Positions 49,600-51,771 of a stretch of 64,000 bases of DNA are shown in pieces (position 1 is the first letter of the stretch; each line of letters begins with the position of its first letter). Position numbers and translations under genes: made by a program. Under the pieces are notes generated by a model. It was not told the DNA's origin. It saw only the letters and a program-made list of their open reading frames with translations, and ran no database searches. The stretch lies in NCBI GenBank assembly GCA_964057225.1, contig OZ059894.1:7812001-7876000 (forward strand), written 5' to 3'. Source of the DNA: Auanema rhodensis (Eukaryota > Animalia > Nematoda).

Positions 49600-51771
49600 C
49601 TATTTAGCAAAAGTTGGAGTAATTATCAAGGGCTGATCCTGCGGAAGCATGAGGCCTGCATCGAAAGGCTCCAAAGATATCTTGTGTTCTGGATCTTCTT
49701 CAATCTGATAAGACGTATTTTGATCAAATTATTATTTTGTCTAGATGAAAACATACCTTAAAGTTTTGGACGATTGAAATCAATCCAAGGACGAGCTCTA
49801 GACGAGCTAAACCTTCGCCGGCACATTGGCGCTTGCCCATGGAAAATGGAACTAAATGCTCCAAGGTAGTCTGTAAAGGGAAGCGTATGTAAGTAATTTT
49901 TCAATTTAAACCTTATTTGGGGTTTTGCCATCAGCTTCTAGAAATCGTTCTGGACGGAATTTCTTGGGTTCAACAAACACTGGTGATGTTTCATGTACAC
50001 TCTAAATCATTTATCATGTTTTTTGTTTCTATTCTAGGCAGTCTTTCTAACTGTACACATAGAAAAACTAACATATATTTGACCGAGAACAAGCATATTT
50101 TCTGGAATTTTATGCCCTAATACAGAAGTATCGCGTGTCGTTCTGTGAACTACATTCATCGAAATAACGTTAGCACACCTCTGAACTTCGCTGACGACAG
50201 CACTGAATTTCATATTATCATAATCAGTAAAGATCTCAAACTAAATTTACTTGCAGTACGGAAGTCTCTGCCTGTCAGCCATAGATGGGAAAACATTAAG
50301 TCCAATAGTTTCTTCGATTTCCTTTCTCATTTTATCCTGAAAATAAGATTCTTTTCATCTCCTCTTATTACAGTTTCATTATTTTCAGATTAACTAGAAA
50401 TACCTGAACATCTGAATAGACAGCCATGTATAGCATTGCCCAACGAAGAGTTGTAGAAGTAGTTTCCATTCCAGCTAAGAAAAAATCTGAGCAAATGTTT
50501 AGCAACTGGCGTTCACTAAAATAAGAAAAAATCGAAACAAATATTAGTCAAATGCCGTTCACTAAAATGTTGGTCAAGTATATTAATTGAATGAAGAACT
50601 TACTCGTAAGTTCCGCTGGCTGTCATTTTCTGATAATAGGCTTGGCAAAAGTTTTCTGGTTCAATCTCAGTATCGTATCCTTTCAAAGCATTAGATAGAT
50701 CAAGTTTTGCATATGAACAAAGCTAAAATGCGGTTGAAAGTTCCAAAATTGTTCAATGCGATGTTACCTTCTGGGAAGTACGCTTAACCTCTCCAGCACA
50801 CATATCTCCTATAATTGGAACATGCTCAATCCATGGAATAAGATGAGGCAAGAAGATTAATTTGTTTTCTCTGTAAAACAATTTGACATAATTTTGAAAG
50901 AATCGTCAGACCTACCTGGATTTTGCAAAGTCTTCGATCATACATTCACAGTAATCTTTAACACGATCACAATCGTCATACTTGTAGCGAATACCATACA
51001 GTACATTAGAAATTACATTGCTAACGTAAAGCTGAAGACTTTAATTGTTTCAACTTAATTTTAAGGTTCAACCTGAAGGGGCCATCTTAAGTTGACGCTT
51101 TTTCCATCGGAACATGCAGCTGCAATATGTGAAATACATTCTTCCATGGATTCTCTAACCTACAGAGAAATATTTTCTGTTCAAAAATTGTTATATTACC
51201 TGAGTTTCCATTTGTCCCTTTCCCATTCCGAAATCTCTGAGAATATGAAGAGATATTCTTCTCTGATCTCTCCATGATTCACCCTAATATTTGTTTATAA
51301 ACTCAAGTATATCTATGAAAACTTTAATATTCTATACCTGAGAGAAAACTATTCCTCCGTTTTCTATAGATTGGAACGCAGTTTGTGGAAAACCCCCTGG
51401 ACGGCCAGCAAAATCATCTCCTAAATATTTTTTCCAACATGAGAACAGTAACTGTTTTGAAAACCATGATTAACAAATGCATCCTTGATTCCCTCATAAC
51501 TCATTATACATAATGTTGGATGAGGTAAGTATAGAGTGAAGATTGGTCCATATTCTTCAGCTAATTCTTGAAGATGGTTTTGGCTGTCATTCCATCGAAA
51601 CTGTAAATTTCATTTTTAAAGAACCACTCATGTATTCATAATTACATGAGTAAAGTTTCCAATTATTGGAAATGGAGTTGGTCCTTTCGGATATTTTTTG
51701 ACTTTAGAATAGAAATGCCAACAATAGGTTGCAAATAAAACAATGGCAGCTGTTAAGATAGCCGCAATCAT
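49600..51771 (-). CDS. Cytochrome P450, clan 2, copy B (intact only if the distal of two tandem acceptors, near 50516, is used)
   Basis: [62 protein letters not shown]; TAG at 49602-49600. Confidence 0.92.

Follow-up and report, generated by a model that had tools for sequence, protein, structure and literature searches.

We found that copy B, one of four related cytochrome P450 genes clustered in the nematode Auanema rhodensis, carries the boundary between its intron 8 and exon 9 twice over, as a 46-nt tandem that is real and in register with the paralogues. Each of the two units consists of a splice acceptor and the beginning of the exon encoding the I helix, the upstream one matching the neighboring copy C exactly and the downstream one resembling copy D. 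The reading that we favor, with a probability of about 0.6, is that the tandem is the footprint of an exchange between paralogues. The extra unit would be tolerated because it brings its own acceptor, so that intron 8 can lengthen from 42 to 88 nt.

The window that we analyzed is the 64,000-nt stretch spanning positions 7812001-7876000 of contig OZ059894.1, in a chromosome-scale assembly of 181 Mb in 112 contigs. Comparison of the window with itself revealed the four P450 genes, named A, B, C and D. A and D lie on the strand opposite to B and C, which share the same orientation and are 3 kb apart. The model of D was assembled from open frames plus GT/AG sites. The four genes are placed as follows:

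About 46675-48750, plus strand: P450 copy A, a diverged copy, taken as outgroup.
49600-51771, minus strand: coding span of P450 copy B, 14 exons with exon 9 starting at the distal acceptor, mapped exon by exon onto D; its exons match PF00067 collinearly.
52676-54796, minus strand: coding span of P450 copy C, mapped exon by exon.
56738-58863, plus strand: coding span of P450 copy D, 14 exons, 13 introns of 40-71 nt, 496 codons plus the stop.

Searches of Pfam and of solved structures were performed with single exons only as queries. The matches of B to the Pfam p450 family (PF00067) are collinear, running from exon 2 (family positions 19-61) through exons 9 (262-296), 11 (326-367) and 12 (369-394) to exon 13 (401-433), and exons 9, 11 and 13 each score above the Pfam gathering threshold on their own; exons 6 and 8, used as single-exon queries, gave no Pfam p450 match. 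B, C and D have in common the heme-binding motif FxxGxRxCxG in exon 13, as well as AGMETT in exon 9, EVQR in exon 11 and PERF in exon 12. Among solved structures, exon 9 queried alone best matches CYP2D6, 2R1, 2C8/9, 2E1 and 2B4, and exon 11, likewise queried alone, best matches CYP21A2, 2D6, 2B4, 2E1 and 2R1, aligning with the SRS-5 region of CYP2D6. The four genes are CYP2-clan cytochrome P450s. B, C and D resemble one another at 95-97% and contain short patches of sharp divergence, SRS-4 among them. Copy C has further diverged coding patches at 54671-54700, 54600-54624 and 53060-53077 (exons 1, 2 and 12), which are akin to its SRS-4 unit but lack a duplication; they include LPIVGNLID, a replacement of QNH, and SILDQ in place of SVHET. 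Outside the coding sequences, a module of ~550-650 nt downstream of B recurs in inverted orientation, with 98-99% identity, both upstream and downstream of D (48562-49386, 55807-56454 and 58959-59515), and accompanies the inverted B/D duplication.

Tandem Repeats Finder identified a single array at 50476-50568 (period 46, 2.0 copies, 83% matches, score 128), which, apart from a microsatellite, is the sole tandem repeat with a score of at least 80 between 44000 and 64000. Read on the minus strand, each B unit opens with ttttag followed by tgaacg; it comprises the acceptor and the 40 nt with which the I-helix exon starts. The tandem, its surroundings and the corresponding stretches in the other copies are arranged as follows:

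50604-50722, minus strand: exon 8 of B, ending in phase 2 (..ACT TAC GA/gtaagt).
50562-50603, minus strand: original 42-nt intron 8 of B, ending at the proximal ttttag and identical in alignment to intron 8 of C.
50522-50567, minus strand: unit 1 of B, made of the proximal ttttag (50562-50567) and 40 nt coding 13 residues, 46/46 identical to C.
50476-50521, minus strand: unit 2 of B, made of the distal ttttag (50516-50521) and the 40 nt that begin the working exon 9, 3 nt different from D.
50516-50518, minus strand: TAG ending the frame entered from the proximal acceptor, inside the distal acceptor.
50404-50515, minus strand: exon 9 of B in the distal-acceptor model, with the I helix and AGMETT.
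53546-53591, minus strand: single unit of C, of the derived H/T/F type.
57942-57987, plus strand: single unit of D, of the Q/L/S type with three private changes.
47877-47922, plus strand: matching stretch of the outgroup A, 13 residues.

The two units of B differ from each other at 9 of 46 nt. A, C and D have one unit each, and among the four paralogues the tandem is confined to B. The original prediction of two diverged 46-nt units at 50476-50567, each a ttttag plus the start of the I-helix exon, is thus borne out by Tandem Repeats Finder and by alignment, as is its assignment of unit 1 alone to C and of a unit-2 type alone to D. Translation from the proximal acceptor stops after 14 codons, while the frame entered from the distal acceptor is open throughout exon 9, and use of the latter leaves B intact, with 14 exons and 496 codons. 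Translations from both acceptors are in agreement with the expectation that only the distal one would yield enzyme. The TAG that had been described as immediate is indeed there, but it comes after 14 codons and its AG is that of the distal acceptor itself. In addition, a strong acceptor-like run, ttttttcttag, whose use would shift the frame, is found inside exon 9 of every copy, 41 nt past the true acceptor (D, 57976-57988; C, 53545-53557; B, 50475-50487).

The duplicated segment, which immediately precedes AGMETT, makes up the N-terminal half of the I helix and matches Pfam p450 positions 262-296. Exon 9 aligns with CYP2D6 chain positions 274-306, where the segment beneath a 15-residue stretch of B is RIVVADLFSAGMVTT, and the position that distinguishes the S and F variants adjoins the residue aligned with the Asp of VVADLF. 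We take this Asp to be D301 in CYP2D6 numbering, in which case the S/F position would match A300, one turn above S304 and V308. With this numbering, the alignment, itself a direct tool result, would place the S/F position in SRS-4 (substrate recognition site 4). The Pfam and CYP2D6 alignments agree with the earlier statement that the segment precedes AGxETT and lies in SRS-4, and its residues probably play a role in the active site. Exon 3 alone, compared with solved structures for an SRS-1 mapping of the replacements private to B, found no P450.

At the position of the unit, outgroup A carries a Q-L-x-N-I-C-S-D-F-F type. Because of this, the Q/L/S type of unit 2 and D is, by outgroup comparison, the ancestral one, and the H/T/F type of unit 1 and C is derived. 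The three differences between D and unit 2 are changes seen in D alone. Divergence is locally concentrated in the 46-nt stretch: 9/46 sites differ between the units, compared with 6.3% divergence between B and C exons (binomial p about 0.002), and D has 3/46 private changes there, compared with a D rate of 0.8% (p about 0.006). A search of the whole genome (181 Mb) at up to 3 mismatches, with a 36-mer in the case of the C type, found no further copy of either unit type. A looser genome search with 21-mers for a donor of the C-type unit returned 14 non-self matches, compared with 6 in a reversed control, none of them at a P450 locus; a donor elsewhere in the genome was rejected, these matches being near chance level. 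The next paralogue beyond the cluster copies is only 54% identical in exon 9, and genome searches for a second example of such a tandem found none. As for other tandem arrays in this genome, the canonical 22-nt SL1 spliced leader is present in about 3,450 exact or 1-mismatch copies, which mark the genome as that of a nematode; they are arranged with periods of about 252 and 341 nt, and very large SL1 arrays are located at C3:6741531-6766485 and from C3:14134320 onward.

The grouping of sites changes in mosaic fashion along the three copies B, C and D. B groups with D over most of its 5′ half and at its 3′ end. At each of the 9 sites that set unit 1 apart from unit 2, unit 1 has the base of C; unit 2, like most of B, groups with D. 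Outside the unit, the first C-private sites are reached only about 165 nt upstream and about 130 nt downstream. Since the 5′ half of B is D-like, only a short patch would have come from C. A simple unequal crossover between C and a D-like gene is ruled out, because B upstream of the tandem is mostly D-like in its 5′ half. Of the out-of-register exchange that had been proposed, exchange between paralogues is retained, as unit 1 is C's and unit 2 is of the B/D type, but a simple out-of-register crossover is not. Elsewhere in the cluster, exon 10 of A (48062-48147) and exon 10 of D (58127-58212) are identical at 86/86 positions, compared with 61-88% for the other exons of A; A exon 10 is situated inside a stretch of ~390-430 nt, about 90% similar, that includes introns 9 and 10, and the whole stretch suggests gene conversion between A and the B/C/D lineage. 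Both signs that mark conversion or templated repair between paralogues are thus present, namely a tract identical to a paralogue and independent indications of conversion in the cluster.

From the anatomy of the tandem, the identities of its units, the intactness of B and the direction of change, we infer how the repair, the choice of acceptor and a step of nonsense-mediated decay (NMD) would have combined. The downstream unit would be B's own ancestral-type sequence and the upstream unit a copy of C's derived sequence. This copy could have arisen either from a short repair-synthesis tract templated on C, which was rejoined beside B's own unit, or from a plain 46-bp tandem duplication in B, the upstream unit of which was later gene-converted from C. 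Conversion by the latter route would end at the duplication junction, because homology with C stops there. The junction (..ttctta/ttttag..) has at most 1 nt of microhomology and its flanks do not differ between B, C and D, which prevents the two routes from being told apart by sequence. Read as exon, the added 46 bp would shift the frame, and each unit has its own acceptor. Splicing to the distal acceptor would remove unit 1 within an 88-nt intron and produce a full-length enzyme with an ancestral-type SRS-4, and the proximal acceptor would then be a decoy, yielding messages that end 14 codons on and are expected to be degraded by NMD.

The two acceptors of B are identical from -7 to +6 (ATTTTAG/TGAACG), the distal one lying behind a longer T run and the proximal one after ccaaca. 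The proximal acceptor, together with the 42-nt intron and the next 40 nt, is identical to the working arrangement of C, and must therefore be competent. RNA structure hiding one acceptor was rejected, since the acceptor region folds no better than shuffled sequence (z = -1.07). An intron of 88 nt is near the local range, which is 40-71 nt for the introns of D. In C. elegans, U2AF reads a UUUUCAG-type core at the 3′ splice site, with no branch-point consensus, and in one unc-93 reporter with two identical sites in that species, 97-98% of splicing took place at the downstream one (Ma and Horvitz 2009, PMC2762039). Alternative 3′ sites that break the reading frame occur frequently in C. elegans and are NMD targets (Ragle et al. 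2015, PMC4484395). Given that both cores of B are the same and that C. elegans has no first-AG rule, use of the distal acceptor is plausible, and by analogy it may dominate. Dominance of the proximal acceptor, if it were the case, would mean that B is largely silenced.

With the distal acceptor, B has exon lengths as in C and D and all 26/26 splice dinucleotides intact (GT/AG, 13 introns), and its 1.49 kb of coding sequence shows no stops, frameshifts, exon indels or lost splice sites under this model. Changes private to B occupy 38/1488 exon columns compared with 3/629 intron columns (Fisher p = 0.0008) and are about five times denser in exons; B-private changes in synonymous codons also exceed the intron rate (p = 0.0006). 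The B state is derived at 24 of the 32 B-private exon sites that can be compared with A. Copy A as the source of these changes is ruled out, as it has the B state at 2/32 sites. The B-private changes are tightly clustered: exon 6 has 4 within 13 nt, exon 8 has 5 within 13 nt and exon 10 has 5 within 50 nt. No donor paralogue for these patches was found in the genome, and the exon bias is therefore partly unexplained. Neutral decay is disfavored because it predicts equal rates in exons and introns plus indels; the pattern better fits conversion that homogenizes the copies except for B-specific patches held by selection, and as a whole the comparison suggests that B is still under selection. Pointing the other way, besides the lack of a donor for the patches, the pN/pS ratio is 0.53 in B versus 0.16 in D, and the YPDVQ/HPDVQ motif has Ser in B where C, D and CYP2D6 have Pro, a replacement that could reflect relaxed constraint.

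These last features bear on another account of the locus, in which B is a young pseudogene or a strong hypomorph, with the proximal acceptor taking most of the splicing and the message ending at the TAG. We consider this unlikely, though it deserves to be taken seriously: the intron and unit 1 are identical to the functional arrangement of C, a stop follows 14 codons after the proximal acceptor, a Pro in a conserved motif has become Ser and pN/pS is raised, at 0.53. However, with 38 private changes in its exons B has acquired no second lesion along 1.49 kb of coding sequence, exon indels are at zero, introns have a far lower rate of private change than exons, contrary to the expectation under neutral decay, and in C. 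elegans it was the downstream of two identical sites that won (PMC2762039). That the tandem is an assembly artefact, created by merging reads of C into B, is hardly credible. Such a merge would be favored by the identity of unit 1 with C and by the position of B and C, 3 kb apart in the same orientation, but the insertion is exactly one 46-nt unit, in register, and is closely flanked on both sides by B-private variants (50415, 50437 and 50675); moreover, unit 2 contains a private base, and in this chromosome-scale assembly (181 Mb in 112 contigs) no alternative B-like contig was found. It also seems quite improbable that B and C inherited the tandem from a common ancestor, the C type having arisen in an upstream intronic unit, after which C lost unit 2 and D lost unit 1. 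Such a history would account for the sharply different unit of C having no donor elsewhere in the genome. However, it requires two independent precise deletions, the nine changes are concentrated in 24 nt while the remaining 22 nt of the unit and the 42-nt intron are free of them, which is not the pattern of neutral drift, and diverged patches of this kind also occur, without duplication, in exons 1, 2 and 12 of C.

A functional reading was part of the original prediction, according to which the intron stores a spare active-site variant and acceptor choice acts as an NMD rheostat. We regard it as very doubtful that the tandem has been retained to store an alternative SRS-4 cassette, with regulated NMD setting the output of B. 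An open P450-like reading is kept in both units, the loss of either would leave an in-frame gene, and the SRS-4 stretch is a divergence hot spot, with 9/46 nt in C and 3/46 in D. But the unit has an acceptor and no donor, the lone GT in unit 1 being 23 nt before the next AG and too close for an intron, and its length is 46 = 3x15+1. It is neither a whole exon nor frame-keeping, as a mutually exclusive exon cassette would be, and because it lacks a donor and is 3n+1 long it cannot serve as an alternative cassette. Nor is the tandem conserved among the paralogues in the manner of regulated unproductive splicing, A, C and D having one unit each, and none of the evidence found supports the rheostat or the storage of a spare variant. 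The integrity of unit 1 in B needs no selection, since the unit is the same as in C and may have been acquired recently; the folding of the region is not better than that of shuffled controls (z = -1.07), genome searches found no second example, and storage for future use is not selectable as a function. The prediction that losing one unit switches the variant does hold as plain sequence logic, as either loss would leave the gene in frame. The tandem might also be a live, polymorphic intermediate in a “duplicate, then delete” swap of SRS-4 between P450 paralogues, with one-unit alleles of the Phe or the Ser type and with the acceptors already splitting the output of B between enzyme and NMD; this we think improbable.

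The preferred reading, a paralogue exchange absorbed by splicing, has parallels in several known systems. The primate CYP2D6/CYP2D7 pair consists of gene-conversion mosaics with diverged islands at substrate-recognition sites. The nematode paralogues are comparable in being 95-97% alike with short, sharply diverged patches including SRS-4, but the exchange in B would have left both versions of an island side by side, with none replaced. In human CYP4F3, exons 3 and 4 are mutually exclusive duplicated exons that change the substrate specificity of the P450. The tandem in B likewise consists of duplicated coding pieces for alternative versions of a substrate-contact region; in CYP4F3, however, each piece is a complete exon with an acceptor and a donor, and the frame survives either choice, whereas the B unit is acceptor-only and frame-shifting, and one choice gives enzyme. 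Introns can also be gained or slide by tandem duplication, as described by Lehmann et al. 2010 (PMC2891723) and for a potato RdRp gene (PMC4974935). As in those cases, B has a short tandem duplication including a splice signal, and splicing out one copy would save the reading frame; unlike in them, B gains no new intron, its 42-nt intron becoming 88 nt by duplication of the 3′ boundary, and the two copies differ, one of them matching a paralogue. Lastly, the acceptor pair resembles the competing 3′ splice sites of C. elegans (PMC2762039; PMC4484395) in having two AGs with U-rich cores, where out-of-frame products are NMD targets and U2AF affinity and position decide, but the natural C. elegans pairs are at most 18 nt apart and often conserved, whereas the pair in B is 46 nt apart and has identical cores.

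Taken together, the tandem is a further example of known events, combining a boundary or tandem duplication absorbed by splicing with the conversion mosaics of P450 genes, and calls for no new mechanism. If the distal acceptor is used, B would be a natural case of a frameshifting exon-boundary duplication made harmless by its own splice acceptor, in which an exchange between paralogues sets two versions of an active-site segment next to each other. B would likewise provide a natural test of how the nematode spliceosome chooses between acceptors with identical cores 46 nt apart.
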